64,000 nucleotides of DNA from Lama glama (lineage: Eukaryota), in the NCBI GenBank assembly GCA_028534125.1, contig CM052827.1, forward strand, positions 33,914,001 through 33,978,000, read 5' to 3'. Positions within the stretch are counted from its first letter, which is position 1. Every line of letters begins with the position of its first letter. Below the pieces are notes generated by a model that saw only the letters and a list, made by a program, of their open reading frames with translations, was not told where the DNA came from and made no database searches. Shown piece after piece: positions 23,318 through 53,018 of the stretch. A program made the position numbers and the translations under genes.

Positions 23318-26300
23318 ATGGCGGAGGCCGGGCCGCAGGCGCCGCCGCCCCCGGGCACCCCAAGCCGGCACGAGAAGAGCTTGGGACTTCTCACCACCAA
23401 GTTCGTGTCGCTTCTGCAGGAGGCCAAGGACGGCGTGCTTGACCTCAAGCTGGTGCGGCCCGGGCTAAGGGGCGGCAGAGGGGATGGTGGACCAGGCCGG
23501 GGCCGGTAGCGGGAACCCCGGGGCGGCCCAACTGAGCCCGCAGAGAGCAGACTGTCATCCATGTGCTTTCTCACAGGAGGGAGGCTGGGAGCTGTTTCAT
23601 TCATTCAGCCGAGGCCATTGGGCATCAGCTGTGTGCCAGGCTTGGGGCTGCAGGTGCTGGTCCTCGTGGCCCTTCCTGGCAGGTGTGGGGAGAAGGGCAT
23701 CAGAACAGCAGCTCAGGCTTCACCAGGCCTCTTCCTACCTCGCGCTTCTGAGCTGCTGTAGTGCCTGGGAGGTGGGTTGGGATCCAGGCCACCCCTTTTC
23801 CAGACTATTCCAGACCAAGTCTCACCTGAGAGTGAGGCTGAGCATTTCCCATTCTGTTCTGCCTGCCAGGCAGCTGACACCCTAGCTGTGCGCCAGAAGC
23901 GGCGGATTTATGACATTACTAACGTGCTGGAAGGTATCGGGCTGATCGAGAAAAAATCCAAGAATAGCATCCAGTGGAAGTGAGTGTGGGCACCTGGGAG
24001 GGCAATGGGATCGCCTACCCAGAAGTGTCAGGGGTGGGGGTTGCAGGAGTGAGCAGGGGCTATGGGCCCCAGGATTCTTGGCAGCCCCTCTCNNNNNNNN
24101 NNNNNNNNNNNNNNNNNNNNNNNNNNNNNNNNNNNNNNNNNNNNNNNNNNNNNNNNNNNNNNNNNNNNNNNNNNNNNNNNNNNNNNNNNNNNNNNNNNNN
24201 NNNNNNNNNNNNNNNNNNNNNNNNNNNNNNNNNNNNNNNNNNNNNNNNNNNNNNNNNNNNNNNNNNNNNNNNNNNNNNNNNNNNNNNNNNNNNNNNCTGC
24301 GGGGGAGTGGATGAGGGGCTCTTTAGTCCAGCTGGGTTTGCTCTGTGGTCCCCTAGGCCCTGTCCCTCTTGGGAGGATGGTATTGTATGTCCTGGCCAGG
24401 TCCCAGCCTTGGGCTCCCTTCTCAGAGCCTCTCCCCTCCATCAGTTTTGGCCTATGATACCTCCCCATGTAGACCCCAGGCCTCAGGACTTTTTCAGGAC
24501 TGTATGTCAGAGCTGTGCTAAAGATCAGGGTCCTCTCTGTGGTCTGCTATCTGTCAGTGTAGGCAGGGCATCAGCTGTTCTCCTTAACCCCCGCACCTTG
24601 GCCTACGTGACTCATGAGGACATCTGCAGATGCTTTGCTGGTGAGCAGAGCCTGGGTAGGGGGAGATGGGGGTGGGGTTGGGCTGAGCCACAGCCCTGAA
24701 CAATGAGCTCAGTGCCCAAGGAGATTTCCTTCTCTTAAGAGGGTTCCTGGGGCCTACCCAAAGAAGATCCAGACAGGGTAAGTCCTGGGTTCGATGGTCA
24801 CTGGACCCTGTGGAGGGTAACCATACTGAGAGGATATGGGAATCCTGGGCTGGATCCCTGGGTCAGCCCCTATCTGCACTGTCCCCTAGGTATGACTTCT
24901 CAGGTGTAACAGAATCATACAAGGGAGAAAGTGTGTGTGCATGCTGGTGTGCAGGGGGCAACGATGCCAACTTCCAATCTATAGTTAGTTTAGTTGCATT
25001 GTAGTTATGGGAACTATTCCTTCTCCATCTTGCACTTCCCAGACTGGTTCTGGGGAAGGGACATTGGCTTTGGCCAGAATATCTACGTCTAGGGAGCAGC
25101 CCCTTCAATCAGGGAGATGTCCATGGCCAGCAATCTTTTGCTCCATGTGTCTGAACCCAGATTTTCTAGTTACAGACCCCTGGGCTCTTAGGAGGAGAAT
25201 AGCTTTAGTTCTCTGCCTTAGCCACTGAGCCACCATAAGGGATGAATGAAGCCTCCTGTCTAGCCCCTCGGAGACCATGAACTCCTTCCTTGCTCCAAGG
25301 GATAGATACCCCCATTCCCAGCTCAGATTGAACCCATGGGCCTTGACCCATTCTCCTTGTCATCCTAGGAGACACCCTCCTGGCCATCCGGGCCCCATCA
25401 GGCACCAGCCTGGAGGTGCCCATCCCAGAGGTGGGTGCTCAGCCCAGGCAGGCAGGGTTGATTGAGGGCGGGTGCTGGCTGTGGAGCCTGATAAGTCCCG
25501 GGTGGGGCAGGTAGGGGGAGGCCTGGGGTTTGGGGTTATCTAGGAGGACGGGCAGTCTGGGGTGGGAGAGGACACTGTGGCCCTGGCACAGGGTCAGGCA
25601 AGGGCCAATCCTGTTTCCAGTTCCATCTCTCCTCCGTCCTCCACCTCTACCTCCAGGGACTCAATGGGCAGAAGAAGTACCAGATTCACCTGAAGAGTGT
25701 AAGTGGCCCCATTGAGGTACTGTTGGTGAACAAGGAGGCATGGAGCTCGCCGCCTGTGGCAGTGCCTGTGCCACCACCCGAAGATCTGCTCCAGAGCCCA
25801 CCTGCTGTCTCTACCCCTCCGCCTCTGCCCGAGCCTGCCCTGGCTCAACCCCAGGATGCCTCACGCCCAAGCAGTCCCCAGGTGACCACCCCTACCCCTG
25901 TCCCTGGCAGCACCGAAGCTCAGGGGGTGGCCAGTCCAGCAGCTGAGATCACAGGTGAGGCACAACGGGAAGCTGGTAATGGGGTGATTTCTGGGGCCCA
26001 AGAGGCAATACCTCTGTGTGATGGAAGAGACCTTGTGGGGTTTGTCCTTTTCCTGGCCCCCAGCTGGCCTCTCCTTGCTAGTGCAATGAATGAGCCTTTT
26101 TTAACAGAGCTTTGACTATGTGAAAGGGCATTAGTGGTGGCACTTTTCCCCCAGATCTGCCAGTATCCCACTGGCCCTGGCAGCCCCTCTTGATTTGTGG
26201 TCACAGCAGGTGTGTCCATGATTCTCCCTCCTGCAGGCCTCATGCCCCTTCAGTGACTAATTTTCATGGTACCACTTTGTGAGTGATTGGCAGTGCCTAA

Positions 26301-28959
26301 CTCTCCTTGGGCCTAGGAACCAGGGCTGTCGCATTCTCACTGTGGGTTCTAGCATGGCCAGCTTTAATATCCTACTTCCTGCCCCCATGTGACTGGGTTT
26401 GGGGGATGTGGTTGCAGTGAGTGGCGGTCCTGGAACTGATAGCAAGGACAGTGGTGAGCTCAGCACACTCCCACTGGGCCTGACAGCACTGGATACCCGG
26501 CCTCTGCAGTCCTCTGCCCTGTTGGATAGCAGCAGCAGCAGCAGCAGCAGCAATAGCAGTTCATCTGGACCCAACCCTTCTACCTCCTTTGAGCCCATCA
26601 AGGCAGACCCCACAGGCGGTGAGTGCTTGTCCTCTTGGGAACAGGGAGAGCCTAGCCTCAGACAGTCCTTGGTCAGAAACAGACTTGGGCCTCAAACCCA
26701 GTTCTGTCTCCTCAGCCACAGCTGGCCAGCCCAAGAGCCAGCTCCCTGCTATCCACCTCTGCCTTGGCACCAGAGCTCTGCCAGCTAGGGTGAGGAGCCT
26801 GGCCTCTGGCTTGGTGCTTATGCCCCTTTACCCACTTCCTGAGTTGACACAGAACTGCCTAGCCCTTCCTCAAGCCCTGTGTTCTACCCCGTGGACCTGT
26901 CTCAGGAAGGTGTGAGCACTGTCCTAGGGAAGGGGCTGTGCTATGGTCCTCAGGCTCCAAAGGTGGGCAGTGTCTTAGAGGTGATGTCATTTCCTCTCCT
27001 CTCTATCTTGTGTTTTGAGTGTTTGCTTTTTTTAGGACTCATTCTTCTCCGCTCACAAGAACCACTTAGTCTCTCCTCACTGAATGACACTTCGTCCCTT
27101 GTGTTCCCCTCCCTCACCTTCCCTGTATCCTGTCTGGACTCCTAGAAAAAGTCATCTCCATTCTACTCTGTATCTCGGTTCCCTAGTCAGCCTTCAGGTT
27201 GCAGCAGTCGCCCCCCCCCCCCCGCCGCCCCCCATAACACACACACAGCCCACAACCCCCCACCACGCCACGCCAGTGCTCTCAGTAAGCTGCCCAGCCC
27301 TGATGGCCAGCTCCAGCGGGTTTCTAGGCTGATTTGCTCTGGGGCTGTTTTGCTCCATGTGGATGCTCTTTTTCTCCTTTGGCATTAGTGATGCCAGCAC
27401 TTGGCTCTTCTCTCTTAATGACTTCTCCTTCTGATCTCTCCCTGGTGTTCATTTAAATCTGGCTTTTCAAGTCTCTGGCCCATTTCACACCTGTGGAGGC
27501 CCCCAGTTCTGGGTAGATGTATTCCCAGTCACCGTCTTGCCTAGGTCTTTTGCCTGAACTTTACCTCTTTTGTCTACATGCCTTCCTCTGCACATCCAAT
27601 AGGCACTTCATTCCCACACGTCCACATCTTCTTTACCCCAACTGACAAGTCTGAAATGCAGCCTGACTGTGACAGTTTTCTGTCTTCAAACGTATCTTTG
27701 AGGAGGGTATAGCTCAGTGGTACAGTGCATGCCTAGCATGCACAAGGTCCTGGGTTCAATCCCCAGTACCTCCATTAAAAAATAAATAAATAAACGTAAT
27801 CCCCCCCCAACCCAATTAAATAAATAAATGAACTGCTTTAAATAAAAAAGTATCTTTAACAGCTCCCTAAGGCCTCCTGGATAAAATCAGAACTCCTAAA
27901 CCTGGAATATGAAATCCCTTGTGACCTAGCTCTCTCCTTTCCAGCTTCATTTTCCTGTTTCCCATGTGTGTCTTCCCAGTCAGACCTTTGTAGCAGAGTC
28001 ATCACCCTGTAGCACTAACCCCTATTTAAGAGTCTGTCTGTCTCCTCTGTCAGGTGACCTGGCCTGGGGTGTGGTATGTGAGCATGGCACCAAGTAGGTG
28101 CTTAGCAAGGACAGGGATGGACAGGGTGTTTGCCATCAGATGATATGCATGATGAGCCCAGAAATAGAGTGGGATTGCTTCCCTTCTTCAGAACCTCTGA
28201 GTTAGAAGGGCTGTACCAATTACCTACTGCGGGCCTTTGGGACCCTGGGCTTGGCACTGAGAAATTCAGATCTAGTAGGGGAGCCTGAGAGACAGTGTCA
28301 TCTTGACCTAGGGTAGGGCCTACGTCTCAGCTGTGTGGAGCCCCTGGGTGGGTGATACAGGATCTGAGAAAGCAGGGGCTAGAGTGGGACTAGGCTGGAC
28401 ATCTGTGCCCTTGAGCATGTCTTTCTTGTTTTTCAGTTCTGGAACTCCCCAAGGAGCTGTCAGAAATCTTTGACCCCACGCGAGGTAAGGCAGTGTTCCT
28501 CTCTGGGGCTGGGGTGAGGGGCACAGCTCACTGGGTCTTGGGGCTGTTTTCTTGCCCTTCTGAGAACCATATGATTGTGTTTGATCCCTGGGCAAAGGGC
28601 ACAGTTCTTGATGGGTGGGTGGGTGTGGTCCCCTTCATGGGCTTTGGTGGGTGGAGAGGTGGGAGCCAGAATGTAACTGAGCTCTCCCTCCATCCCCAGA
28701 GTGCATGAGCTCAGAGCTGTTGGAGGAGCTAATGTCCTCAGAAGGTACGTGGCCCAGAAAGGTGGGGGGTGAGTGTGGGCAGGGTTTGGGTGGCTACTGG
28801 GAGGGGTCTTGGCCCTGAGGACTCAGCCTGTTGCTCTCTGCAGTGTTTGCACCCCTCCTCCGCCTTTCTCCACCCCCCGGAGACCACGATTACATCTACA
28901 ACCTGGACGAGAGTGAAGGTGTCTGTGACCTCTTTGATGTGCCTGTTCTCAATCTCTGA
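23318..28959 (+). CDS. E2F4: Transcription factor E2F4 (about 406 aa; exon 3 hidden in the N-run)
   Basis: Exons 23318-23452, 23870-23979, [exon 3 expected within N-run 24093-24296], 24597-24640, 25369-25430, 25657-25954, 26418-26618, 28437-28484, 28700-28744, 28844-28959. Motifs [27 protein letters not shown] and the pocket-protein-binding [23 protein letters not shown] at 29756-29761. Confidence 0.96.
24581..24596 (+). other. U12 (minor spliceosome) branch point and AC acceptor of E2F4 intron 3
   Basis: TCCTTAAC at 24581-24588, then AC at 24595-24596 directly before c ttg gcc tac ([14 protein letters not shown]). No AG acceptor at this junction. Confidence 0.88.
26528..26551 (+). repeat. 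Coding (AGC)8 poly-serine microsatellite in E2F4
   Basis: agc x8 in frame, giving [17 protein letters not shown]. Confidence 0.95.
27700..27849 (+). mobile_element. tRNA-derived SINE (camelid Vic-1-like)
   Basis: gggtatagctcagtggta...gtcctgggttcaatccccagtacctcc followed by an (AAAT)n tail. TSD gtatcttt (27692-27699 / 27850-27857). Confidence 0.88.
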
Positions 28960-30195: not shown

Positions 30196-33100
30196 ATGGC
30201 GCCCCCGCGGAATGTGGTGAAGATCGCCGTCCAGATGCGTGACGCCATCCCTCAGCTCATCCAGCTGGACCAGGTCACCTGGACTCCACCCTACCACCCA
30301 CCTCCGGGTCGCCCCTTTCCCCTCCAACATACGACCCTCCCCCTCCCCAGGCTCCTCCCCACTCCCTCCCTGTTGAGTGACCGCTCCACTTGCAGGCAAA
30401 ACCCCTGGCTGCTGTGCTGAAGGAGGTGTGCGACGCGTGAGTGTGGGCCTCCCAGGCGCAGGGGTGGGGGTGGTGGGTGGAATGGGGGCAGGAGGGAGAA
30501 GTTCCCCCCCAACCAGCTCACTGAGTCTCTGCTGCCCACAGGTGGAGCCTGCTTCACTCTGAGCGCTATGCCCTCCAGTTTGCTGATGGGCACAGGAGAT
30601 ACATCACTGAGAATGTGAGTCCCCTCTCGTCCTTGGCCCCATATTCCACTGTATGACCCCTTCTAACCCACCTGGCCCTGACTTCTCAGACTCATCATCC
30701 CACTGTCTAGAACCTGATCTTTCTTTTACTGACTCCCAAATCTTCCCTGGTTGACAACTCAATTAACCAATCCTCAGAGCTCTTCCTGACTTCTCTCCAT
30801 TTTTGACCACCTTTTCCAGAACCGCATGGAGATCAAGAATGGCAGCATCTTGTGCCTCAGCACTGCTCCAGTAATGCCCCCCCCCCCCACCCTGCCCTCA
30901 CTCCCTGTCCCTCTCCTCTTTTCTGCCCACCTGCGCCTCTGCCCCAGGTCTGGAGGCTCCAGGCCAGCAGTGCCCCACCTAGTGGACACATTCCCAGTTC
31001 CCACTCCTTACCTCCTCACCTCTGCTCTTGCTCCCAATCCTGCCAGGACCTTGAGGCTGAGCGGCTGTTGGGTGGGCTGCAGAGCGAGAGTCGTGAAGGG
31101 CGCCGGGAAGCCCTGCGGCACCTCGTCCTGTTGGCCCCAGACATGACCTTCGCCCGGGAGGTTATCAGCCGTGATGGGCTTCAGAGACTAGGCACCATCA
31201 TTGAGGATGGGGACGAGTGAGCACAGGGCTGTGGTGGGTGGTGGACATGATGGGGCTGGGGGTCCTGGTGTAGCCCTGCTCAGCCCCACATGTCCCTCCA
31301 GCCTAGGGGAGGTGCTGGCCCTCACACTGAGGGCCTTCTTGGAGCTCATGGAGCATGGCGTGGTGTCCTGGGAGACACTCAGCATCCCCTTTGTTAGGAA
31401 GGTGGGTAGGAGTTTCTAGGGGCAGTGGGGTGGTGTCAGGGTCTAACCTTCCATGGTGATGAGGTGGTGACAACTCCTGCTTCTCTTACAGGTGGTGTGC
31501 TACGTGAACATGAACCTGATGGATGCATCTGTGCAGCCCTTGGCCCTGGGGTTGCTGGAGAGTGTGACCTTGAGCAGCCCTGCCCTGGGCCAGCTGGTCA
31601 AGAGCGAGGTGCCATTGGATAGGCTGCTGGTGCACCTACAGGTGTAAGTGTCTGGGGTGGGATTCAGATGAGGGGAGTGTGGCTGGACTCCAGATGGCTG
31701 GTTGAGCCCTCTTCTTGCCCCAGGATGAACCAGCAGCTGCAAACCAAGGCCATGGCACTGCTGACAGCTTTGCTGCAGGGAGCCAGCCCTGCTGAACGTA
31801 AGGTAGGTATGCATCCAGTGGCTGGATGAGGGGCAGGAACTGGTGGGTGCTGTGCTCCACCCTAGGCGTACAGGGTGCATGCTCATGGTGGAGTTAAATC
31901 ACCTAAGTCCCCCTTCCCACCCACCTCAGCACATGCTTGACTACCTGTGGCAGAGAAACCTTCGCCAGTTCATCTACAAGGTAAGAAGGACCAGACCAGG
32001 CAGACCCCTCCCAACTCCTCTCCTCCTGAGCCCACACTCACATCCACGGACTGCCTGTTCTCCAGAACATCATCCACAGTGCAGCGCCACTGGGCGACGA
32101 GATGGCTCACCACTTGTACGTACTGCAGGCCCTTACACTTGGGCTGCTGGAACCACGCATGCGCACGCCACTGGACCCCTACAGCCAGGTAGCACAAACC
32201 TCTGGGATGCACAAGGCTGGGGATGGCTGGAGCTTGGCTTTGACTCTTCAGTCTTGACACCCCTCCAACAATGACCCCAGGAGCAGCGGGAGCAGCTACA
32301 AGCCCTGCGCCAGGCTGCTTTTGAGCCAGAGGGGGAGCCCCTGGGTGCTGGGCTGAGTGCTGACCGTCGTCGTTCCCTCTGTGCCCGCGAGTTCCGCAAA
32401 CTGGGCTTCTCTGTGAGTGACCCCTACAAAGCTCCACACCCCCACCTCAGCCTGAGACTGCTGTTATTCCAGAGGGCTGGGAGCCCTTCCTGACTGGCTT
32501 GTCCCCCTTCCCTAGAACAGCAACCCTGCGCAGGACCTGGAGCGTGTGCCCCCTGGCCTGCTGGCCCTGGACAACATGCTCTACTTTTCCAGACATGCAC
32601 CCAGTGCCTACAGCCGGGTCAGTGACTGGGCGGGGTGGGATAGCAGGAAGCCACCTAAGCAGGATCTCCATGGGCTGTCATGATTCCTCACCCAATTCTG
32701 TGTTCCCATCATCCAGTTTGTGTTGGAAAACAGCAGCCGTGAGGACAAGCATGAGTGCCCCTTTGCCCGGAGCAGCATCCAGCTAACTGTGCTGCTGTGT
32801 GAGCTGCTCCATGTCGGAGAGCCCTGTGAGTGGTGCTCAGGGCACAGCGTGTCTAGGAACGGGGGACGGAAGGGCAGAGAGGGCCAGGGGCTGCACACAC
32901 TTTCTCCCTGAGCCCCTCCTGCCCCCCCACTCCAGGCTCCGAAACAGCCCAGGACTTTTCGCCCATGTTCTTCAGTCAAGACCAGAGCTTCCACGAGCTC
33001 TTCTGTGTGAGCATCCAGCTGCTGAATAAGACCTGGAAGGAGATGCGGGCCACTCAGGAGGACTTTGACAAGGTGCGTAGGATGGGAGCAGAGAGCCCTG

Positions 33101-35868: not shown

Positions 35869-38800
35869 GCACAGGCCTTAGTGTGAGAAGTGGACAGGGC
35901 AAGAGGCAGAAGGTCTGCTCCTCCCCAGCCCACCTGTAACCCTGGCCTCTGAACCCAGCCCTGGACAGGAGAGCAGGAGCTGCCATTTCCAGGGGTCTGT
36001 GACCGTGACATGTAGCTGGAAAACGTCCCTGCTGGGTTGTGGGGCAGAGTAGGGCAGGAAGCCCCTTGGGCTGCCCTGGATGAGTCCCACCCCTAGTCCT
36101 AGAAAAGGAGAAGGGGCTCTGGGGCATGTAGCAGAAGGAGACAGAAGGCACTGAGTCAAACTCTAGGTCAAGAAGCCAGGGCTGAGGACTCTGGAGTTGA
36201 CGGAGGCTGAGCTGCAGGGCTGGTTACTGACCTGGCCTCAGAGTGTTAGGGTCAGGTCAGCACCCCCCACGAAGCGGGACTGGACACAGGTCACCTGGGG
36301 CAGTTGGGCTTGGAAGCACCTGACAGAAGCCATGCTGATGCCAGGACACATGGCCACATCTAACGTCTGGAGTTGCTTGCACGCTTGCCCAGTGGTATCC
36401 AGTGTTCTGCAGGGAGGCCACTAGATGAGTGCCCAACTCAGCATCGGCCCCAGCCAAACCCCTGTACTGTGGCAACACCGGACACACTCACTGCTCTGTA
36501 AGCCGACTGCAGCTGGACAGGTTGAGATGCCGCAGCCTCGGCCAGGAGCTGGCTGCCTGGGCCCAGCCCTTGTCGTTGAGGAGGCTGCAGTGACTCAGCG
36601 CCAAGCGCTCCAGGCTGGGACAACCCCTGGCCACAGCCACCAAGCCCTTGTCTGTAAGTGCGGGCAACAGGCTCAGTGACAACTGCTTCAGCTGGGGGAA
36701 CTGGAGCACCTGTAAGGATGGGGGTGGGGTGGAGGGTAATGTGTACTGGAGCCCAGGTCTAGGGCCCTTCCAACTTCCTCTGCCCCCAGACAAAGGAATG
36801 GCCAAAGCAGCAGAAGCCCATAAGAAAGGAAGTTTTTCCAAGCAAAAAGTGGGTTGGCCCAGACCCCTGGCTCCAGCCCCCAGCCCCACACCTTGGTCAA
36901 ACTGGCATCAGTCAGCTTACTGCAGGCTGTGAGGTCCAACTCCCGCAGGGCCTGCAGCGTGAGCAGGGAGGGGTCCTGTGGCTGGGGAGAAGGGTTCTTG
37001 GGGCTGGAGGCCTGATGCTCCAGCTCTCGGTGTGGCTGTGGGAAGAAGCCCCTGCCTCAGGTTCCTCCTGAGTTTGACCCTCAAATGTTCCCAGAGAGAG
37101 ACTTAGGAGGGGTAGGAGGGCAGAGAACGCCCCACCCACCTGACCTCCAGGGTCCCTCACCTGGGCTCTTTCAAAGCCTCCTCACTTGGTTCCCTCAGCC
37201 CCAGAAACCCCCAGTCATGGAGCTCCTTGCACCAGGCCAGACACAGGACTGAGAGGTGGGTAAGATAGGTGCAGATGGCTTGCATGGTTTGGTCGGTGAG
37301 GGCCACACAGGAGGATAAGTCTAGCACCCTAAGGCTTGGGCTCAGCACGGGGATCAGGGAGAACACTGAGGCGTCCTAGGAGGGAAGTGTAAAAGGGAGA
37401 GGGCAGTGGAGAGGTGTGCCTGTGTCACCAGGCTTGGCAGGGATCACTAGTAGGGTTCTGCCCAAGGTTCCAGCCCCACAGACAATAGGGAGCTACCACA
37501 GGGTCCTTCGAAGGAAGCAACAATGTTCTGGTGCTGGTGAAAGTCAGTGTAGATGGATGAGGTGGGTTCTAGAGATGCAGCACCAGGAGAAGGACAAATT
37601 GGCTGGGGCAGGAAGGATGCAGGTGAAAATTTCTGTGGTATTCACCTTGCCTATGCTCCCAGCACCAGTGGCGGACATCTGATCCTAGCTGAGCCAGTCA
37701 GACATGCTCCTGCTAGAACTGTGAGGTCACAGACCAGGTAGGGCTGCCACCTGCCAGGAGCAACTGGGGTTAGGTAGGGGGAGCAGGAATTAAGCACAGA
37801 ATAGAGGAAGCTGGTTTGTAGTGAGATGCAGAGACATGAGAATGTGGGGCCCCAGAGAGAGCAGCTAAGAGACACACAGCAGTGAAGATGGAATAGGACA
37901 GGGGAAGAGAGGCGCCTGTGGGGAAAAAGGCTGAGATGGTTTTCAGGTTAGGAATGCCCTGGCCACAGTGCTAGACTGAAGGAATAATCAGCTAACGAGG
38001 GAGAGACTGACATTGCCAAGATAGGGACACCACCCAGAGGGGCAGGGCTGAGCCCTACTGAAGAAACTGGCTTCAGCCAAGAAATGACCCTTCTGCTCCC
38101 ACATCACATTCCCTCCCTCGGACCCTGCCAGAGCAACCACTTCGGTGGAACCTCAGTGCCCCTTCCCCGCAGGACTGGGTTCTGTCACCCCTTCTACCAG
38201 CCTTCCCGGCTTCCAGAACACCTGCCCCCAGAGCTGCTCCAAAGACTGCAGTGGTCACTAAGCACTTGGCTTGTGAGGTGTGTGCCACCTTGGGGGCTGG
38301 ACCACCCTGATCTCTTGGACCTCCCTCTACCTGGACCCACTGTTGGGGCTGCAGGGAGGAGTGTTGGTGGCAGCACTGTCTATCTAGGCTCCTTTCCGCT
38401 TCCAGACTATGTCCCCAGTTCAGTTCTACTACTACCACTTGGACATGAACACTGGGCACCTCCCTGATGCCACATTCCCAGTCACCCCAGCCCTTAGCCC
38501 TGGTGGGGAAGGAACGAAGGGGATGGGATGCTCACCTTGAGTGAGGAGCAGTAGGCCAGGCTGAGGGAGGCCAATGGGGGTGGAGCTCCATGCACCGAGC
38601 CCAGCGCCTGGGCCAGTTCCCACCCTCTCACCTGGCAGCACTCGGCCATGTTGAGGCTCTGCAGCTCCTGCAGGCCCCCTAGGGCTGAGCATCCCGCATC
38701 TGTGACCCGCTGCAGCTTCCTCAGGCTCAGGTGCTGCAGGTGCTGCAGGTGCTGCAGGCCTCAGCTCACAGCCAGGAGCGCCCCTTCAGACAGTTAGTTC

Positions 38801-40226
38801 TGAGCAGCCACTGAGGTCCAAGGAGGTAAGGCCTGGTTGCTGGTAGCAAAGAGCAGCCACAGCCTCTGTGGAGAGGTCCTGGCATCTGTGCAAGCTCAGC
38901 TCCTGCAGCTGCAGCCCGGCCACCTGGCCCAGGGCCTGTAGGGCCTTGGGTGGCAAGCCAGTGCCACTCAGGTCCAGGGCGCACAGCCTACCAGCCCGCT
39001 CCTTCACAAATCGCAGCAGGTTGTGAAAGGAGAGTTGGGAGGGGGAGGAGTCCTAGGGGCCGATGGAGCCCCTGGCTGGGCCTTGTTCGAAGGTGAGGTA
39101 GCAGTAGGCCAAAGAGAGGCGCTCCAGGCTGGGGGCACAGCTACTGAGACGGTTGAAGCTGAGATCAGCCAGGTCCCGCAGGCTAGCCAGGTTGAGCTCA
39201 CAGAGGCCACTCAGTGCCTGCTGGACCCTCTGTGCTGTCTCAGGCTGAGCTAGCAGCATGCCCGATGTGAAGAGACTGTTGCAGCCACTGAGGTCAAGGA
39301 TACACAGGGCCAGGCAGCCCAGGATCAGGGCCACAAAGGAGGCCTCTGTGGGGCTGCCCCCACCGAGGCACAAACTCTGCAGGTGTGAGCCCATGTGGTA
39401 GGCAACAGACTGCAGCACCCGGTGTGAAGCCGGCGAGCCATCCAGGTTGGTCAGGCTGATGCAGGAGATGCCCCTGAGACCCAGGCTCTTGATGGCCGGA
39501 AGGGAGGCAGAGGACACAGGGATGTTATACCACACGTTGGTCTAAGAAGCAGCATTGGGCCTGGGGTTAGCCCTCTGGCCTCAGAGTGTGCTGGGCATTA
39601 GGTCTGGTGGCCATTTGCTGGCTAGAGTTTGAGGGCAGGTCAGGCAAGGGCCCTTCTACAATAGGGACCCACTGTGGTGTGTGGTGTCTTGTGTGGTTGA
39701 AGAGGTGCTGATGGAAGTGGGAGGTAGGACGAGGTCACACTGGGTCTCAAAAGGGATGACTATGAGGGGAGGGCAGGAAAGTTAGTGATGGATGGGACTG
39801 AATGCCTGCCGCGGGAGGGGCTGGGTCAGAGCGGGGACTTGGCATTCTTGCTGGGTATAGGAGGGCTGGAGGGTGGCCTGGAGGAGACCCAGCGAAGCCC
39901 CCAGGGAGCAGGAGGACAAAGTGTGCTGGATCCCAAGCTTTGCGACTTTCAGAAGGTGGCCCTGAGACCCATGGACTCAGCTCCCAATCCAGGGCCTCAG
40001 CTTGGCATTAGCCAAGCAACTAGCCTCCCCTACTTTCTTGAGAACATATAAATAGCCCTCAGAACAGCTGAAGGCTGGAAGAAGCAACACAGGTGTCACC
40101 AGCATCCTCCGTGGCCGAGGTGCCAGAGATCTGGGGCAGGCAGTGAGGCCTAGGTCCCCTGGTGGCCTCAGTGTCTCAGCCACATGAATGTTTGCAAAAA
40201 CGGGTTTTGTGTGTGACTGAAAATAT

Positions 40227-40287
40227 TGCGCATGCACGTGCGTGCGAGATGTGCGCATGCGTGTGTGCATGCGCGCTCACGTGTGTG
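40227..40287. promoter_or_regulatory. Alternating purine-pyrimidine tract with NRF1-like (TGCGCATGC) and E-box (CACGTG) motifs
   Basis: tgcgcatgca at 40227, cacgtg at 40235, tgcgcatgcg at 40252, tgcatgcgcg at 40266, cacgtg at 40278. Confidence 0.4.
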
Positions 40288-43200
40288 GGCCCTGCGGGCT
40301 CTAGAGTTCAAGATGTGTTTGTGTTCCCTGCGGCTCATCTCTGGAGGGTCTGTCTTATCTGTCCAGGTAAAGAGAGAGAAGCATCCACTTTCTGTGGGCA
40401 GGAGCTCAGAATAAATCTCAGAGGCAGGGAGGAAGCTGAGCTGGCCCTGCCTTAGAGGAACAGGGGAGTGAGTGTGGGGAGCACACAGTCAGCATAGGGT
40501 GGGGCCGATAGGCAAACTCAGGGCTAAGTCACTGTGGGAATAAGCTGGCTTGTGTAGGAGTTTGGGGAACCCCCAGTGAGGGAGATGTTCTCCTAGAACC
40601 TTCCCTGATTTTGTGCCAGATGGAGCCAAAGGAGAGTAGGTACAGGAAAGGGTGGAACAGGTCTGTGGGGGAAGGGAGAAGAGGGCTTGGCTTCTAAAAT
40701 CCTAGCCCTGTTTCTCTACCCCTGTCAGATGCCCAGGTTGCAGGCAAGTGGTTTGCAAAAGCTCTTGTTTTCACAAGCAAGCTCCCCAAAAAACCTGTCT
40801 TGTGAGTAACCACAAGGACAAGCTGACATTCCCTGCTTGTTCCCCACAGAATATCATCAAAAGGGAACCACCAGAAAGGCAGAAACGATGCCTGGTTTGC
40901 AGTCCCGCAAGATACTTATCAACAGAATCCTCCCAAGAAGACACGTGGAACTCATTTCCAGGTGGGGAGAACCCAGCCTGGCTTCTCCAGAGAGAGAAGC
41001 AGCCGCTTACAGCTGTCATGACGGGAAGGAGCATGTGGTAAGAGAGGGCTCCTGGCCAATTTCACAGGGATCAGGGGGTCAAACCCGGTTCCCATTTCAG
41101 ACCTCATGGTCATTATGGATGAGAGGTGCACTCCCAGACTCCATCGTGGACACTGGGAGACGTGGGGTAGTGAGGACTCTTGAGGACCTGGGTTTGTCTC
41201 TGACTGAAGGAGAACTGGGGAAGATCCCAGGGTGTGAGGGTGGGGAGGGTACTGAAAAAATCAGGGAGGAAAGGTTTTAGAAAGGAAAGGTAAAGCATGC
41301 TTTCAGCCATTTCAAAGCCCTGCATGACAGATGAGCCAATCTGACGAACAAGTGAACTATGGCTGGGGAGTACAGAGCAGTGCTGGTTGCCAAGGCAGCA
41401 CTGCCCCCACCAGTCACATGCCACCCCCACAGGCCCCGCTCCAGGAGCCTTCAGTCTTCCTTCTTTCCCTGTCTTCCTGAGCCTCTGCTGCCAGGAATGT
41501 TCTCCCCTCTCCAACTGCCTTCCTGGGAACAAGGCAGACGAATGGCCCAGGGTCTAAATACAGGGCTGGCAGGTGGACACAAAAGCTACCTGAGAAAGGG
41601 GCAGGGCCTGTCCTAAAGGACATCGAGCTATGAGTGAGGGTGAGATTTGAGACCACCTCCCTGCTCCCCGCCGTTTTCCTTGGTGGGGAGGAGGCAGCCT
41701 CTAAGCCATCACTCAGGTGGTTTACCCTGGACTCAAATACAGGAGCTCAGGAGCAGCCTGTTAGGGATATTTATCATCTGTGGGGACAGAGCAGCTGGCA
41801 GAAGCAGCAGGCTTCTGGGTTCTGGTCTTTGGTTCCACTGTAGGCAAGTTCTTCTTCCCAGCCCCAGGAAGATGCTTCTAGAGGCTCAAGGGAGGCCCAG
41901 GTACCTGCTCCAGCTTCCACACAGAGGCCAACTAACACCATCCACACAAGATCCAACTAGCCCCCTGGTCTCCTCCTTTCCCAATGATGACACCTTTAGA
42001 GTAAATGGGAAATCATTTGGAATATGCCCTAAGTCTGCTAAAAGCAACACATGTCCCTTGACTATGAGAGGCCAGGACTCTAATGTCATACCTCCCAAAG
42101 TCCAGAGCTAAGACTATAGGCCTGTGTGCAGGCTTGGAAAGCTATCTGATAGAGATATGGCCCTCCTGTCTGCTGGCACAGGAATCTAAAGTTAACACGC
42201 ATGTTTTCCAGAAGGCCTTTGAGAAAATATATACCCTGGCAGTATATAGAAGAATCAGACCTCAGGGGTCATTTCCAGAGGCTTTATAGACACCTCAGGT
42301 AGAAGTCAGAAGAGGGCAGGAGCTGAGTCATCCTGAGTTCTCTGCAGTGACCAGTCCAATGGCAGGCAAGCAGGGCTCCCCCAAGAATGGACAGAGCAAG
42401 GGTGTATGTCAGGGTGCCACCTTTGTCTACCTTCTTATTTGAGAAAAATTGAGATTAAGTGGGGGCAGGTCAGAGAGAATAAGAATTCACTGAGTCCAGC
42501 ATCCTAGCCTGGCCTGGTGAGCCACAGGCCCCAGCTTGGCCTTAGTGAGCCAGAATCTTCTGTAGACGCTACTCACTGGGGCATGACCTCCTTATCAACC
42601 TGCCCACATAGGGTTCTGCAGATTGCTCTCTGGGACATGATGGTAGTGTGATGTCAGCAGGTCCCTCGATGCCCAGATGTCTTTGGCCTGGCTTCCCAGA
42701 GCTCCCAGCCTCAGGGCTGAGTTTTGCAGAGGCAATAAATAGGTCATTGTCAATGTTCTGTCTGGAGCTCATATTTAGCTGGGGCAGCCCCAGTGTTAAA
42801 ATGGTAGACTCTACAATCCCAAACTCTGACCCTGCCTCCTCCTTTTCCTCACTCCCTTACTCGTATTCCAATCTCACCTGAATCCCCAGAGCCTGACTGG
42901 CCACTTTGCTTCTTCCACCCTTTCCTTCTTTGCTGGACTCCAGGAGGCCTCTCCCCTCATCACCTCTCCTCAGGGCCCTCGTGGTCCTGTCCCTGTCATG
43001 CTGCTATGCCCTTTCTCCTTGCCCCCTGCCCAGCCAGAGATGATGAGACCACTGCCTCCTCTGGGTGTGTGCTGGGGATACAGGATTCTGCCCCAGGAGG
43101 CCGTGGTCTCCCCTCTTCCTGCACTGTCAGCACTGGCCTCCCCCCTCCTCGCCACCTCCCTGCACTCTTCTCGTTCCCCTAAGACTTCTCTTCAGCCCAC

Positions 43201-45989
43201 CATCTTCTCAGCCCCTGATGCTACTGCAGCAACCCCCTCCCCAACTCCAGCCTTCTCAGAGATTACCTGTTCAGTTTCAAAAAGCAACCAAAGTTTTTAG
43301 AGGGGGAAGACCCTCCCCTTTCCCTGTTCATATACTCCGGCCCACCCCTGACGGGACCCATCCTAACCTTCTTCTGTCCCCTGCTCTTGGGTTCAAGGTG
43401 ATCCCCTTCTCCTGGCCTGCTGAGCCTGTTCCCCACCTTCTCCTTTGAGAACCCTGAAGTCTCTGCCTTTCCATGGCAACTTCCTCAGAGTCCATGAACA
43501 CCTTAGTCTTAACAAAAAGCCCCCCTTGATCCTGCACCCACTCTTCTCACCTCTCACACCCTCCCATCTACTGTCTCACTTCTTGGAAGCATTCAGGTGC
43601 CCACACCCACTGTGGCCACTTTTTTACCATGGCTTTGCCCACTTACCCCTTCACCACTGTCCCCAACAGAATCACTCATTCTCAGCAACAGCTCCCCTCT
43701 GGCAAGATCATCAACATCTGGGGTCTCCTCTGCAGACCTTCCACAAGTGTCCTCTCTGCCATGCCACCTGTATGGATGGTCAGTCTCCCCCAATGCTGTC
43801 TCCCACTGGGGGTTCTGAGATGTTGCCCTCTTGGCTCTCCTATCTTCTAGCCTGTTCCCCATCAGCCTCTTTCATGGTCACCAAAGAAGAGCCCAATCCA
43901 TAGACCAGTGAATTCTCCATGGTTTGTTCCACTCCACTCCACACACACAGACACACACAGACACACAGACAAACACACACACACAGTTTACCTCCACGTA
44001 CACCCTGGCAGACTGCATTTCATCCCATCCTAACTAATTTATTTGTGGTCCACATCTTCTTCCTGAGTCGTGGGCCCTGGGAAACAGGCCCTGATCGACT
44101 TCTCTCTAAATACAAGGATGCAGCATGCCCAGATCTCAATTCACTGTCTTATCTCTGGACTCGGGCCCTTCTCCTAAACTCTCCATGCCCTCTACCAAAT
44201 CACTTAGTCAGAAATCTGCAAGTTATCCTAGACTCCTCCTCCCTCACATCTGCAGTGACCAAAGTCCCTTCCATTCCTTCTCCTCAATACATTGTAATAT
44301 GTCTCTCTGCTCCCCCCTCACTATTCTGCCTTAATTCAGGTGCCTGTATTATCTGTCAGAAATATATTACAGCAGTTTCCTCCTGATCAGGGTCCTGGCC
44401 TCCAGTCTCTCTGGCTCCAGTCTTACCCTTGGTATTGTCATGAGGGTGATCCTCACCAGAGGCAAACTGACCATGCTCTTCAGGGCCTTTGTTGGTTTGC
44501 ACTGCACAGGATAGAGACTGAGAGCTTCCTGGCTAGCACTCGAGCCCTTCTATGTCAGACCCCTGCCTACTTCTTCAGTCCCAGCTCTCGCACACCTGCT
44601 CCCCACGCCAGCTCTGGGAATGCCAACTTCTGACCATTGTCTCATGCTCCAATGCCTTGATTCAGCTGTTTTATCCTGTTTTTCTTGGGGGCCGGGTCCT
44701 GACCCCTCACCTACTCCTATTTGTCTGTTTAGCAAATATTTATTCCCTGCTTGAGATTCAGCCCAGGCATCCCCTTCTCCATGAAGTCCTTTCTGAATCT
44801 TCTCTGCATCCCTGGTGTGCCTCATAAGAGTTTGAGTGCAGCACCCTAGCCCCTCCTTTTGACTTGTGCTGTCTCCCTCTCACTACCAACTTCTGAGTGC
44901 TGTGTCCACCCAAGCCGTGCACCCCCAGGGCCCAGCACAGTGCTGGGCACAGACAGGCAGCGTCACCATGAGCGAGTGAGGCCTCTTCGTGTGTCTCTGG
45001 TAACTTTCTGTCTTTCTTCTGCAGTGTGAATATTCCAAGCCTCTCTGCTGAGGCCTCTACCTCTCTACTTACTCCCCTAAGATAATTTGGCCTCAAAATT
45101 CAACAAGCAAAAAGCCCTCTAGCCTTTAAGGAACTTCCTCAGCAAATGGCTTCACATGGCCAACCCTACCCCTCTGATTCCTAAGAGGTGACATCCTCTC
45201 CATCTTACCCAAGACTGAGCTTTGAACGCTGAAGCCTGTCTCTGCGGCCACCTCAGGCGTCCACCATTCCTGACCTCTCTCCTCCCTATATTCACCCCTC
45301 GTCTAGTGACTCCTTCAGCACATAAACACAGTAGAGACCTCTCCCAGTGAAAATCCTTTTATCAGTCCCACCTCAACCTCTCATTACAGTTCTATTTATT
45401 TCCTTTCTTCCATGGGGAAATTTCTTGCAAATGAAGTCCCTTTCTACACTGAATTTCTTCTCCCATTCACTCCTCAGCCCAGCTGGCTTTTTCTGCCCAG
45501 ATACTAAATGTTGCTGAAGCTGTTGGTGACCTCCCTGGATGTCAAACACCATGGACACTATCTGTTATTTTCTGGATTCTTTGTGGGATTTGACACTGTT
45601 GACATCCACTCAATACTTGAAATGCTCTTCACCTTTGACTTTTGTGCTCTCTTCTTTCTAGGATCTCCTCAGCCCCTTCTGCAGGCCCCTCCTCCTTTCC
45701 ACATCTTTGGACTGGTGTCCTCCCTGGGGCATTCTCTGTGGCCAGCTCTTCACGGCCCTTCATGGCCTCCATGGGGAAGTGACTTAGATCCATGCCTTCA
45801 ACTTCCACCTATTCTTTAATGACAGTCACATCTATATTTATTACCCAAACCTTTCTCTTGAATTCCTCTCCCAGAAATCCAACTACCAACTGGACTCTCC
45901 ATTTAGATGTCTCATACTTCACATTTTCAACAAGTCCAAATCAAATTCCTTTAGACACAAAGCTCAATGACACTGGATACATAACTTGA

Positions 45990-46850
45990 CAAAAGGCCCT
46001 ACTTATACACATACATACACTTAATATATGAGGAGCCTTCCAACTCAGAAGGGAAAGGGAAGATTATACATAAATGGTATTTGGGCTATTTGAAAACTAA
46101 ACAGTTTAGCTTTTTACATTAGAGCATAAATCAAAATAAATTTCACCAATAAAAAATTAATATAAAAATTTAAACCAAAAAACAGAAGAAATAATTTTGC
46201 TGTGAACCTAAAACTGCTCAAAGAAATAAATTCTAATTNNNNNNNNNNNNNNNNNNNNNNNNNNNNNNNNNNNNNNNNNNNNNNNNNNNNNNNNNNNNNN
46301 NNNNNNNNNNNNNNNNNNNNNNNNNNNNNNNNNNNNNNNNNNNNNNNNNNNNNNNNNNNNNNNNNNNGACAAGGGATCTCTAAGTTAAAAAGCAGTGGAA
46401 GAACCGGAGGGGATAGCTCAGTGGTAGATCACATGCCTAGCATGATGTCCTGGGTTCAACCCCAGCACCTCCATTAAATAAATAAATCTAATTATTTACC
46501 CCCTACCAAAAAAAAAAAAAAGCAATGGAAGAAATTAGAAAGAAAAGGATGTTCAGAATCAACAACCTAGCAATTTAACCTCTGAATCTCATAAACAAAC
46601 AGATAGCTACAAATCAAATTAAAAGGCAAACATACTGGGACTGTATTTCAATAAATAGGTAAAAGAAATTAATCTCTTTAATGTATAAAAATTTCATACA
46701 AATGGATAAGAAAAATACTAAGACCCCAATAGATAAATGGACAAAGAACACAAATAAACAAAAGAGGAAATATAAATGGTAGGCTAATGAGAAAACTGTT
46801 CAACCTCAGTTATAATCAAAGTCAAAATTAAAGAGCCATCACTGCTCACC
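45990..46850 (+). mobile_element. Old LINE-1 (L1M-type) fragment interrupted by an N-run and a SINE
   Basis: A-rich, with L1 ORF2 3'-region-like motifs (ccccaatagataaatggacaaagaacacaaataaac, gaaaactgttcaacctcag). Confidence 0.55.
46404..46517 (+). mobile_element. tRNA-derived SINE (camelid Vic-1-like)
   Basis: ggggatagctcagtggtaga...gtcctgggttcaacccc followed by an A-rich tail. TSD aaaagcagtggaagaa / aaaagcaatggaagaa. Confidence 0.85.
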
Positions 46851-47884
46851 TTTCAGAGCAGCTCAGCTGTCATTCACCTTCTAGTGGGCTGTCTCCCTAA
46901 GCTCCGACTTGCCCTCTCCAGTCCACACTGCACTGAAGATCGAGTTCTAAGACACAAATGACCCCATGGCACTCTCCATGGTAACATTCCTTTAAAGGCC
47001 CCATGATGGGAATCAGGAGAAAGCCCCAGCAATGCTGCTGGCGGGGCACATCTGCCAACTTGCTATCTGACCTCTTTCTCCTGGCACTTCTCCCATGCAC
47101 ATCTAAGTTCTAGTCATAGGGAACTTGGCTGGTTGTTTCCAGAACTATTTTACACCTTAGTCCCTTCACCTGTGCTGTTATTAGTCCTGGAAGACCAACC
47201 TTTTCCCTCATCCTGTGCCTTCACGAAGCCTTCCCTGGTGCTGCCAGTCTCCTTCCGATGTTCTTCCAAATGTCCCCACTGCACCCTTCATTCCAGTGTC
47301 AGCATTGAGCACACGATGTATGATCACTCACATATGTATCTTTCTCCTGCACTGGACTATGAGCTCCTCAGAGGAAAGGATATGTTTTATTCATCTGTAG
47401 AGTCCCAGAACTGTACCCAGAGCCAAGTATATATGAATATATACACAAGGATGAATGGATGGATGACGTATGAGCAGGGTCATGAGCAAGCTGAAGTGAG
47501 ACAACTGAGAATGGGCCAAGTGAGGGTGGGCGCCTTACCTCCCGAAGGGCATTCTGGGCTGCACAGTACCAGGCCTGACTCACGAGGGAGGCCTCTTTCT
47601 GATCTGACAGAGGCAGGAAGCTCAGAATATATGTGAGTATCTGAGGGAAAAAGACAGGGCATTGGGGGCTGTTAGAGCTGGGGGCCTGTGGAACCTTCTC
47701 CAGCTGATAACACAGTAGGTCAGAGGGGTTAAGAGCACTGGCTTCTAGTTCATCTTGGATCCTAAGCTTCATGGAGTCTTCACTTCCCCTCTCTAGCCTC
47801 TAGGTGAAATCTTTCCTGAGCACTGTCTGGATGCAGGCTTGTACTGACTGATAAAAATAAAACCTCCTGCTCAATATGATATAA

Positions 47885-48070
47885 AAACAGCCTGGGCATT
47901 GGGACCAGGTAAACCTAGTTCAAATCCTTATTCTGTCAACTGACCTCTCTGAGCCTTGTTTTCCTTGTCTGTAAAATGGCAATTGTAGTGAGGTTTAAAT
48001 GGGTTATTCTGACAATTAAATAACATGGTAGAGTGTCTTGAGTAGGATCTAGAACATAGTAAGTCAGGTG
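47885..48070 (+). mobile_element. MIR SINE
   Basis: ctagttcaaatcc...acctctctgagccttgttttccttgtctgtaaaatgg MIR core. Confidence 0.6.
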
Positions 48071-48719
48071 CTCCTTCTGTGATCTTTAGGAAGCTACAAT
48101 GGGACTGTACTCTTTTCCCACCTTCTTCACTGCCAACTCACCTTCTCAGCTGGCTGTTAAGATATGATCTCAGCCAAACCCAGTCTGGGAGGCTCTGGCC
48201 CTCACTCCACCTAAGCTCCATGAGACTGGGGGTGGATGGGGGTTGGAGGCCCTAGTAGGGACTAGGGAATGGAGTTGCCTGTGAGACCAGGAATGATCTG
48301 ATATTAACTATGTTTTTTTTCTGGAATCTTCCCTCCTTGATGCCTGTGTCACTGTGTTTTCTAGGGTTCGACTCACCCCTCCATTTACCCTGTTTCTGGA
48401 TTCTTCTGTGGCTCCCAGGGCTCAAACCTGGATTTTTCAATCTGTTTACTTTCTAGGACAGTAAATTCATTTGCATGGCTTTAACAGTTACCTCTGTAGA
48501 AATAACCAACAATTCAATATCGCCATATTGTTTTATCATACATGTGCTAGTCTAGTATTTGCCAACTGTCCACAGGATCCTTCATCCAAATGTTTTACCA
48601 TCACCTTCATTTCAACCTCAGTCCAAAGCAGCCCCTCCTCCCAGCTTTCCAGCCCCTGAGCTTCAGTGCCAACAGTGCATCTCACCTAAAAATTCTGTCC
48701 CTTGCTCTCAGATGCAGGT

Positions 48720-48940
48720 GTAAGGCATAGGCTTTAGGCCAGGCTAACTTAGACTCATTCAAATCTCAGCTCCACTACTTCCCAGCTGTGTGACCTGTGT
48801 GACCTCAGACAGGGTACCTGACCACTTTGAACATCAGTTTGCACACCTGTAAAATGTGTGTATATATATTATATTGTATATAATATAATATATATGTAAT
48901 AGATATGATATATATGTATATATTTAATAGATATGATATG
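48720..48940 (+). mobile_element. MIR fragment followed by (AT)n low-complexity repeat
   Basis: ttcaaatctcagctccactacttcccagctgtgtgacct...ctgtaaaatg, then a tatatat tract at 48860-48940. Confidence 0.6.
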
Positions 48941-49599
48941 CTTGACACGTAGATGTTCTGTAAGTGGTTGCTAGGTTGCTGTTAATAATATTTCTACCTT
49001 TGAAACCTTACCACTTAGTAGCCCATATCTTCATCACCCCAGACCTGAATTCTTTCCACAATCTCCCTGCCTCCAGGCTCAACCTTACTAACCATTCTGC
49101 ACACTGCAACATGGTTAATTTTCCTAAAAGACAGCTTTCAGTCTCAGTGCACTCCTAATGAAAACCATTAGGGTTCCCCAGTACCCTCAAGACAAAATCT
49201 TTGCTCTCAGGTCAGCACTGCCAGGTCTCCATGTCTGATTGTACCCTCGATCCCAGAGCTTCCACAAGCCAGTCTCCTCACTGTCCTACAAACACAGCAC
49301 GTCTGCTTCCTTTTGCCTATGTGGATCTTTTTCCTGGAATGCCTTTCTTTAATCTTGACCTCACCAGTCCATTCTCATCTCTTCTTCCCTTCTCTGATCC
49401 CTAGTACACAGAAGGTACTCAGCCAATACTTACTGGATTGAATTAATGATGGACAGTCCTTTAGCTCTACTTTCACCAAAGTCCTCTATTTCTATTTTCA
49501 CCAAAGCTTTGCACAAGGAAGTAGTCAGAAGATAAAGAAGATCATTACTGAGAGGAGAATGACTGAGGAGAACAGCCTCTGGACCAGGGAGGCTAGGCA

Positions 49600-50580
49600 T
49601 GGGGAAGAGAACACAGATGGCGACTGAGACTGACCAAGCCTCTATCCCCAGGGGAAGGTAGGAAAACCTGTCTGAGCAGAGATAAGATAGTGGCCATTCT
49701 GTCTTCTGGTGCTAACCAAAGGAGCAAAGGGAGGGTATAAACCTGTCCTCACTGAGGGAAGAAAACATGATTCTTTGAGCTGAGAAGTGGGGAGGCCTTT
49801 CTAGAGGACCAGAACAGGCAGTGATGAGGATGGAGCGGCCATCCTATGAACCGCATCCCAAAGAGCTATTGGAGATATGACTGGTCACCTCTGAGATCTA
49901 TGAGGATGGAACAGATATCCTCTGGGACCAAAGAGGGAAAGGATGCCATTGCAGGGGGTTCACCCAGGTGGCAGCAGTGCTGTTTTTGCTAAAGGGAAGG
50001 AGCACCATTCCAAGAGCCAATAGGGAAAGGGTGACCTGTCTCCCATGGGCAGTGGGAGAGGGCTGCCAACTCTGGGCAAAAGGGATGGAGAGGCCATCTC
50101 AAAAGGCCACTGGGGACAAAACCTGTTATCTCTCTCTGGCCAATGGTGGCAGAGTGGTCTTGCCCCAGGCTAAGGAGAGGGAGCAAGCACCCCATGGGAG
50201 ATAAGGTGGTAGACCCCATCATCAGGGGCCAAGGGAATGAAGAGCAGGCTTGTCTTTGGTGAAGGAACCCAGAGATCATGCCTGGAGTTGATGGGAGGGG
50301 GCTGTCTCCCACCGCCAGGGGAGGGGGCAGCCTCTCTCGGGGAAGGAATGGAACGACCATCCCAAGGGGCCAGTAGGGGTAAGATCGGTTACCCTGCGGA
50401 GATGATGGGATGGAGCGGACATCTTCCAGAACTGAGGGGGAGGGGCGGCCATCTCAAGAGAAGGGGGCTAGGCAGAGGCCCTGTTCTCGCTGAGGTGACA
50501 GAGCAGCCATCTCTTGGGGCCAATGGGGAAGGAGAGGATGGTCCCCCAAGCTAAGGGGATGGAGTGGCCCAAAAGTGGGG
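49600..50580. repeat. Degenerate ~30-bp tandem repeat in LRRC29 intron 1
   Basis: Recurring GGGATGGAGCGGCCATCTC-like units near 49826, 50082, 50345, 50406, 50440, 50497 and 50556. Confidence 0.5.
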
Positions 50581-50760
50581 CCATTACCCATAGCCTGCAG
50601 GTCCTGGGGTCTCCCGGGCGGGTGGTTTCCGCCAGATGGGCGAGGCCGGGCGAGCTGTCTGGCAGCCCCTCCCCACAGCCCGGGACCCCGAGGTTGGGCC
50701 TGTCCCGAGCTAGGCCTGAGGGCGACCTCCTCTCACCTCCAGGGGCAGCGACTCCGCCAT

Positions 50761-50982: not shown

Positions 50983-53018
<2,036 letters not shown>

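Follow-up and report, generated by a model that had tools for sequence, protein, structure and literature searches.

The window analyzed here, the 64,000 nucleotides (nt) of Lama glama DNA at positions 33,914,001 to 33,978,000 of contig CM052827.1 (assembly GCA_028534125.1, forward strand), contained on its minus strand the camelid ortholog of LRRC29/FBXL9. This locus was most probably (with a probability of about 0.86) a unitary pseudogene, which was disabled in the camelid stem and gained further lesions later. Intact LRRC29 is a 621-residue F-box protein with about 15-20 leucine-rich repeats (LRRs), and by its family it is a substrate adaptor of the SKP1-CUL1-F-box (SCF) type. To our knowledge, LRRC29/FBXL9 has neither an established substrate nor an established function. 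In the window, no uninterrupted frame was left for the F-box together with the full LRR domain, because the frame was broken by an in-frame TAG, a net gain of four nucleotides, a TGA and a single-nucleotide deletion.

The locus consisted of seven coding exons running from an ATG at 50760 to a stop at 36238 (Table 1; positions are counted from the first letter of the window), and the AG acceptors and GT donors were intact for all seven. A tblastn search with the 621-residue protein of Muntiacus reevesi (P0002) spread residues 8-621 over the seven exons with 78-89% amino acid identity per exon, whereas exon 1, encoding MAESLPLE, was located by eye. The exon phases agreed with those of the orthologs. 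The GT-AG introns and the conserved synteny showed that the locus was the intron-bearing ortholog rather than a retrocopy; the reference gene order, with LRRC29 between ELMO3/mir-328 and TMEM208, was that of the human 16q22.1 map. Pfam scores on exon 2 with its flanking intron were sub-threshold for both F-box-like (E 5.7e-4, 20.0 bits, cut-off 24.3) and F-box (E 1.1e-3, 19.2 bits, cut-off 20.5), and the Muntiacus exon that matched exon 2 at 88.6% identity carried PF00646/PF12937. The pieces of the LRR region matched LRR_6, LRR_1, LRR_4 and LRR_At5g56370, of which only the last exceeded its cut-off (27.3 vs 27). Most Pfam matches fell below the curated cut-offs because the pieces were short, and the LRR region could be aligned to the orthologs throughout. 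The F-box motif VSRAWY read VSQAWY in the window (around 47577-47575), with Gln in place of a conserved Arg that is Trp in Pygathrix. The first codon of exon 2 (47640-47638) was ATA, encoding Ile, instead of the ATG of the orthologs, at which shorter ortholog models without exon 1 begin.

To place the lesions, the exons were aligned singly, as uninterrupted pieces, to 18 full-length orthologs (for exon 7, the portion 36304-36405). The TAG lay in frame at codon 205. At this position, Gln is found in Camelus and in 13 of the 18 aligned orthologs, and Arg, Pro or His in the remaining five. The stretch with the four additional nucleotides sat between the codons for “EL”, which ended at 38795, and those for “GALL”, which started at 38784, and the frame thus shifted met a TGA at 38788-38786. 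With the frame restored, the TGA of lesion 3 replaced an Arg that was present in 17 of the 18 orthologs and was Leu in Trichechus. A perfect tandem repeat further along exon 3 had gained one unit without disturbing the frame, and the sizes balanced: the 993 nt of the ortholog exon plus 4 and 9 nt gave the 1006 nt found in the window. Exon 4 had 215 nt instead of 216 (72 codons), and since exon 5 begins in phase 0, the frame into exon 5 was lost. The longest open reading frame (ORF) from the ATG thus comprised 204 codons, covering the F-box and about five repeats. The earlier note on this DNA, written from the sequence alone, had called the locus an LRRC29/FBXL9 pseudogene with seven recognizable exons, GT-AG sites and four frame-destroying lesions. 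Our results agreed with this description of a syntenic, intron-bearing and lesioned ortholog: every acceptor and donor was verified, and all four lesions were read both in the sequence and against the orthologs. The TAG that it had put at about codon 205, the TGA and the short exon 4 before a phase-0 exon 5 were found as described, its 4-bp insertion at about 38788-38791 fell within the ten-nucleotide stretch, and its in-frame 9-bp triplication at 38728-38754 corresponded to a slightly longer repeat of 3.4 copies.

The comparison with Camelus separated the lesions into two groups. The open 162-codon piece of exon 3 matched a 256-residue Logan ORF (P0275) that was 92% identical and seen on 15 contigs; its 90% cluster included XP_032342437.1 of Camelus ferus and XP_031314144.1 of C. 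dromedarius. All three sequences terminated in ...LLAVS (...CSELSDGVLLAVS), one codon ahead of the window TGA, and all three read the site of the four extra nucleotides in frame (CSELSDGVLLAVS). For exon 4, a 69-residue Logan ORF, putatively from Camelus (P0303), ended ...EALKEPR exactly as the window did, whereas the five other matches read of the 20 listed all continued ...PQV into the intron. Judged from these proteins and ORFs, the TGA and the exon-4 deletion are common to Old World camels and the window, and the TAG and the four-nucleotide gain are private to the lineage of the window. The window and Camelus were 93% identical over 317 codons, within which 10 derived replacements were shared (including Arg to Trp in NVWYN), 10 were seen in the window only and 11 in Camelus only. 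This identity and the shared derived lesions place the window within the camelids, as the earlier note had suspected, but outside Camelus, and most likely among the South American camelids (Lamini), which agrees with the five near-identical organism labels of the DNA runs. It had been proposed in the earlier note that the lesions be looked for in other camelids and across eutherians. In Camelus, two of them were seen and the TAG and the +4 change were not; the aligned orthologs of other eutherians were intact at the lesion sites. The Camelus locus is treated as protein-coding in public annotation, under names such as “uncharacterized protein” and “F-box/LRR-repeat protein 20-like”. The C. ferus model XP_032342437.1 (P0282) ends at the shared TGA and has no F-box exon, since its exon 1 (MAESLPLE) is spliced straight to an acceptor within exon 3 (…SLGLRG); its own ATG lies further upstream than the usual one.

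The two private lesions could in principle be errors of sequencing or assembly, or alleles still segregating, in which case the gene would be broken by the two camelid-wide lesions only. DNA runs bore on this question: in 14 runs from several studies and under five organism labels, 97-100% of 365 sampled 31-mers of 36200-39700 were present. All 365 were present in three samples from two studies, no more than one of which can have supplied the assembly. In favor of errors or segregating alleles, the runs of organisms B-E contained 0.97-0.99 of the words, and the absence of one lesion would remove no more than about 1% of those sampled; the protein collection also had no ORF from the lineage of the window as an independent check. 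On the other hand, a TAG substitution and a gain of 4 nt in non-homopolymer sequence are atypical of polishing errors, and both lesions that could be tested independently proved real in Camelus. Errors or segregating alleles are very unlikely. An exact look-up of the ATG-started form of the exon-3 ORF of the window in the protein collection returned no entry, and no host-derived copies of the stretch with the +4 change and the TGA were found in scans of metagenome contigs.

Old and New World camels separated about 16.3 million years (Myr) ago, and camelids separated from the other artiodactyls 55-60 Myr ago (PMC12127551). Since the TGA and the exon-4 deletion are shared with Camelus, the loss probably predates the separation of New World from Old World camelids, and the gene was probably dead more than about 16 Myr ago. 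In the proposed history, a CGA>TGA change in exon 3 and the single-nucleotide deletion at the end of exon 4 would have disabled the gene in the camelid stem. The lineage of the window would later have added the CAG>TAG change at codon 205, the net +4 frameshift and probably the 9-nt repeat gain, and these lesions are presumably fixed in the population. The relic is probably still transcribed, because its promoter, splice sites and exons persist and assemblies of RNA sequencing runs hold part of the stretch (25-32% of the sampled 31-mers of 36200-39700). In any present mRNA, translation would end after 204 codons, and the stop would lie 517 nt upstream of the junction of exons 3 and 4. Under the 50-55-nt rule for nonsense-mediated decay, a stop so far ahead of a junction is expected to make the mRNA a target of this pathway.

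A locus with such a transcript could still make a useful short protein, consisting of the F-box and a few LRRs (204 residues here and about 300 in camels). Alternatively, it could make an isoform from which the lesions are spliced out. Such a product might serve, for example, as an SKP1-binding decoy or as an adaptor with fewer repeats. Exons 1-2, which carry the start codon and the F-box, were open, as were the first 162 codons of exon 3; all splice sites were kept, and part of the stretch was held in RNA assemblies. RefSeq predicts proteins at the Camelus locus, overall replacement counts were not raised relative to intact lineages, and isoforms without exon 4 and/or exon 5 are predicted in many species (forms of 573, 549 and 501 residues). 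Nevertheless, the end point of such a protein differed within the camelids (codon 205 in the window and codon 301 in Camelus), no F-box is present in the C. ferus model, and the conserved Arg of the F-box motif was replaced in the window. Replacements were also faster after the split within the camelids, no known splice form avoids three lesions in one exon, and the stop, far upstream of the last junction, is predicted to trigger decay. A functional short product is very unlikely, and loss of function remains the preferred account of the coding gene.

In a Tajima-type relative-rate test of amino acid replacements, the window had 30 lineage-specific changes, compared with 23 in the pig and 28-33 in the ruminants. 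Because there was no excess, accelerated protein evolution over the whole camelid branch was dropped as a proposal, and the partition into stem and crown replacements was used instead. With dates of 16.3 and 57.5 Myr, that partition gave an excess of replacements after the split (p = 0.003). Arg was lost to Trp, Cys, Gln or His in 7 of 36 window replacements, as against 36 of 487 in the intact lineages (p = 0.02). The earlier note had read the CpG-decay pattern of relaxed selection from five sites with Trp or Cys in place of Arg (NVWYN, ALCIL, GLCEL, RLCAL and SVLCL). All five were present in the window, but at three of them intact orthologs have Cys too (GLCEL in Hyaena and Ursus, RLCAL in Miniopterus and Pygathrix, ALC-L in Pygathrix). 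The list was accordingly judged a weak sign of relaxation, and only the overall excess of Arg losses stood. Together, the rate and Arg data would fit, weakly, a relaxation of constraint late on the camelid stem. Among the F-box orthogroups of Euarchontoglires, Lrrc29 alone had an omega that was not significantly lower than 1 (PMC3984280), so that weak constraint is a property of this gene at large.

Several points weigh against the reading as a unitary pseudogene disabled in the camelid stem. The total of replacements in the window was not above those of the pig and the ruminants, and the excess after the split was no longer significant when a split at 25 Myr was assumed (p = 0.14). The comparison with Camelus was made at the protein level, from which we infer one common nucleotide change behind each shared stop, and the assignment of the exon-4 ORF P0303 to Camelus is itself putative. 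For the TAG and the +4 change, the evidence consisted of the assembly and of shares of k-mers, and the source sample may be among the runs at 100%. In the NCBI annotation, the Camelus locus has a protein-coding model, so that a short product is possible there. No full-length camelid LRRC29 protein was among the best 120 matches, the Camelus models found were truncated, and no search was aimed at a second intact copy elsewhere in the genome.

The surroundings of the locus raised another possible role for the transcript. A mir-328 precursor, with a score of 103 bits, lay on the same strand 3.3 kb past the old LRRC29 stop, and the relic might be kept as a transcription unit whose minus-strand transcript runs on into mir-328, which would be compatible with a dead coding gene. 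Although the loss dates back at least 16 Myr, the promoter-proximal exon 1, the splice sites and all exons have persisted, and RNA assemblies contained the share of words given above. Such a read-through transcript is putative, however; even without selection, splice sites and exons are slow to decay, the 7% amino acid divergence from Camelus is what near-neutral drift would be expected to give, and mir-328 may have its own promoter. Retention for the sake of mir-328 is unlikely, although it would leave the reading as a unitary pseudogene untouched. The other neighbors, all intact according to the earlier note, were recognized by Pfam on single ORFs, which establishes their presence. The assembly gap in intron 2 was separated from exon 2 by 1.2 kb and from exon 3, further downstream, by 6.7 kb. 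Since exons 2 and 3 directly joined ortholog residues 42 and 43, this gap hides no coding sequence and has no bearing on the frame. A transfer RNA (tRNA)-like match of 29 bits on the plus strand (46407-46472) formed the head of a tRNA-derived short interspersed nuclear element (SINE) adjoining the gap. Another such match (27703-27774, plus strand, 43.8 bits; tRNA-Ala AGC by ARAGORN) lay between the E2F4-like and the ELMO3-side sequence and may be a true tRNA gene or a SINE.

Table 1. Exons and lesions of the LRRC29/FBXL9 locus, and other features of the window.
Feature	Position	Strand	Description
Exon 1, coding part	50737-50760	-	ATG 50760-50758, MAESLPLE, GT donor, intact; same as the N-terminus of most orthologs
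Exon 2	47539-47640	-	102 nt; F-box; open; 88.6% identity to Muntiacus
Exon 3	38536-39541	-	1006 nt; LRR region; three disabling lesions and one in-frame repeat gain
Exon 4	37161-37375	-	215 nt; orthologs 216 nt
Exon 5	36892-37035	-	144 nt; ancestral frame open; starts in phase 0
Exon 6	36492-36709	-	218 nt; ancestral frame open
Exon 7, coding part	36238-36406	-	Ancestral stop 36240-36238
Lesion 1, in-frame TAG	39053-39055	-	Codon 205, after 8 + 34 + 162 codons
Lesion 2, net +4 nt	38785-38794	-	10 nt where orthologs need 6; frameshift
Lesion 3, TGA	38761-38763	-	At the conserved Arg of VS-R-GL, in the restored frame
Lesion 4, 1-nt deletion in CCC(C)AG	37161-37165	-	Exon 4 ends CCC AG before the gt donor; orthologs have Pro-Gln before the donor
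9-nt tandem repeat	38728-38758	-	Perfect, 3.4 copies; gain of one unit in frame, adding QHL (+3 residues) vs orthologs
Assembly gap (N run)	46239-46367		Intron 2, between A-rich DNA and a tRNA-derived SINE (46407-46472)
mir-328 precursor	32860-32934	-	Rfam RF00772, 103 bits; same strand as LRRC29
CARD ORF (NOL3-like)	6686-7387	+	Pfam on single ORF
Sec6 ORF (EXOC3L1-like)	19161-20255	-	Pfam on single ORF
E2F_CC-MB exon (E2F4-like)	25495-26112	+	Pfam on single ORF
TMEM208 exon (TMEM208_SND2)	52521-53018	+	Pfam on single ORF

A full-text literature search found no paper that ties LRRC29/FBXL9 to camelids, or to gene loss beyond a general survey of F-box genes. The LRRC29 unitary pseudogene, most probably real and shared across the Camelidae, is unreported in the searchable literature. 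The camelids, a whole family, have probably done without LRRC29 for about 16 Myr or longer, through a loss separate from the human one. This would argue that the gene is dispensable, or dispensable in some physiologies, and would offer camelids as natural knockouts of an orphan F-box protein for comparison. The finding also corrects public annotation, in which the Camelus locus is modeled as shortened “uncharacterized” or “FBXL20-like” proteins. Otherwise, it would be one more ordinary lineage-specific unitary pseudogene in a weakly constrained gene, and a small surprise to the specialist.

The models of some other mammals looked broken as well. Of the canid models (Canis P0003 and Vulpes P0024), that of Canis departed from the ortholog frame after residue 323. 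In Manis, the models and six Logan ORFs (P0297, P0278, P0298-P0302) all stopped at residue 314 and lacked four residues. The frame of Pontoporia (P0005) departed near residue 368, and Balaenoptera (P0270) had 56 lineage-only changes, compared with 29 in the window, and garbled exons 4-5. These canid, pangolin, river dolphin and baleen whale models suggest, as far as predicted sequences can, that LRRC29 may have been lost recurrently. That LRRC29/FBXL9 is an SCF adaptor which mammals lost repeatedly, in human, camelids, canids, pangolins, river dolphin and baleen whale, is a tentative proposal that we regard as somewhat doubtful. If these losses are real and independent, the distribution of the gene among mammalian lineages could point to the pathway it serves, with camelids as knockouts at least 16 Myr old.

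Compared with intact mammalian LRRC29 (Muntiacus reevesi, Bos P0152 and Sus P0167; 603-621 residues), the locus in the window had the same seven coding exons, phases and neighbors, with the F-box in exon 2 and the LRRs in exons 3-7. It differed from these orthologs in its two in-frame stops, the +4 and -1 frameshifts, the 9-nt repeat gain and the longest ORF of 204 codons. Intact LRRC29 of 599-621 residues was predicted in ruminants, pigs, bats, carnivores (hyena, bear and cats), rodents, lagomorphs, Dasypus, Trichechus and non-human primates; an ortholog was called functional when its predicted protein was intact. The human gene, listed as LRRC29 (FBXL9P) with a pseudogene symbol (bioRxiv 10.1101/2023.02.13.528235), is the same gene in a second lineage without a full-length protein. 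The human loss, however, is a separate event, given the long predicted proteins in Pongo, Macaca, Pygathrix, Lemur and Pan paniscus, and an ORF cluster taken for human (P0276) stopped at another place than the window did. Since intact proteins occur in many orders, including xenarthrans, afrotherians and non-human primates, the camelid loss was independent of the human loss, as the earlier note had supposed. Like LRRC29, the SCF adaptors of the FBXL2/FBXL20 type have an F-box followed by CC-type leucine-rich repeats, and the LRRC29 orthologs carried the Pfam domains F-box-like, LRR_6 and LRR_FBXL-like. FBXL2/FBXL20 nevertheless form a different orthogroup, the names of which are given to LRRC29 orthologs by automatic annotation, whereas LRRC29 has its own locus beside TMEM208.

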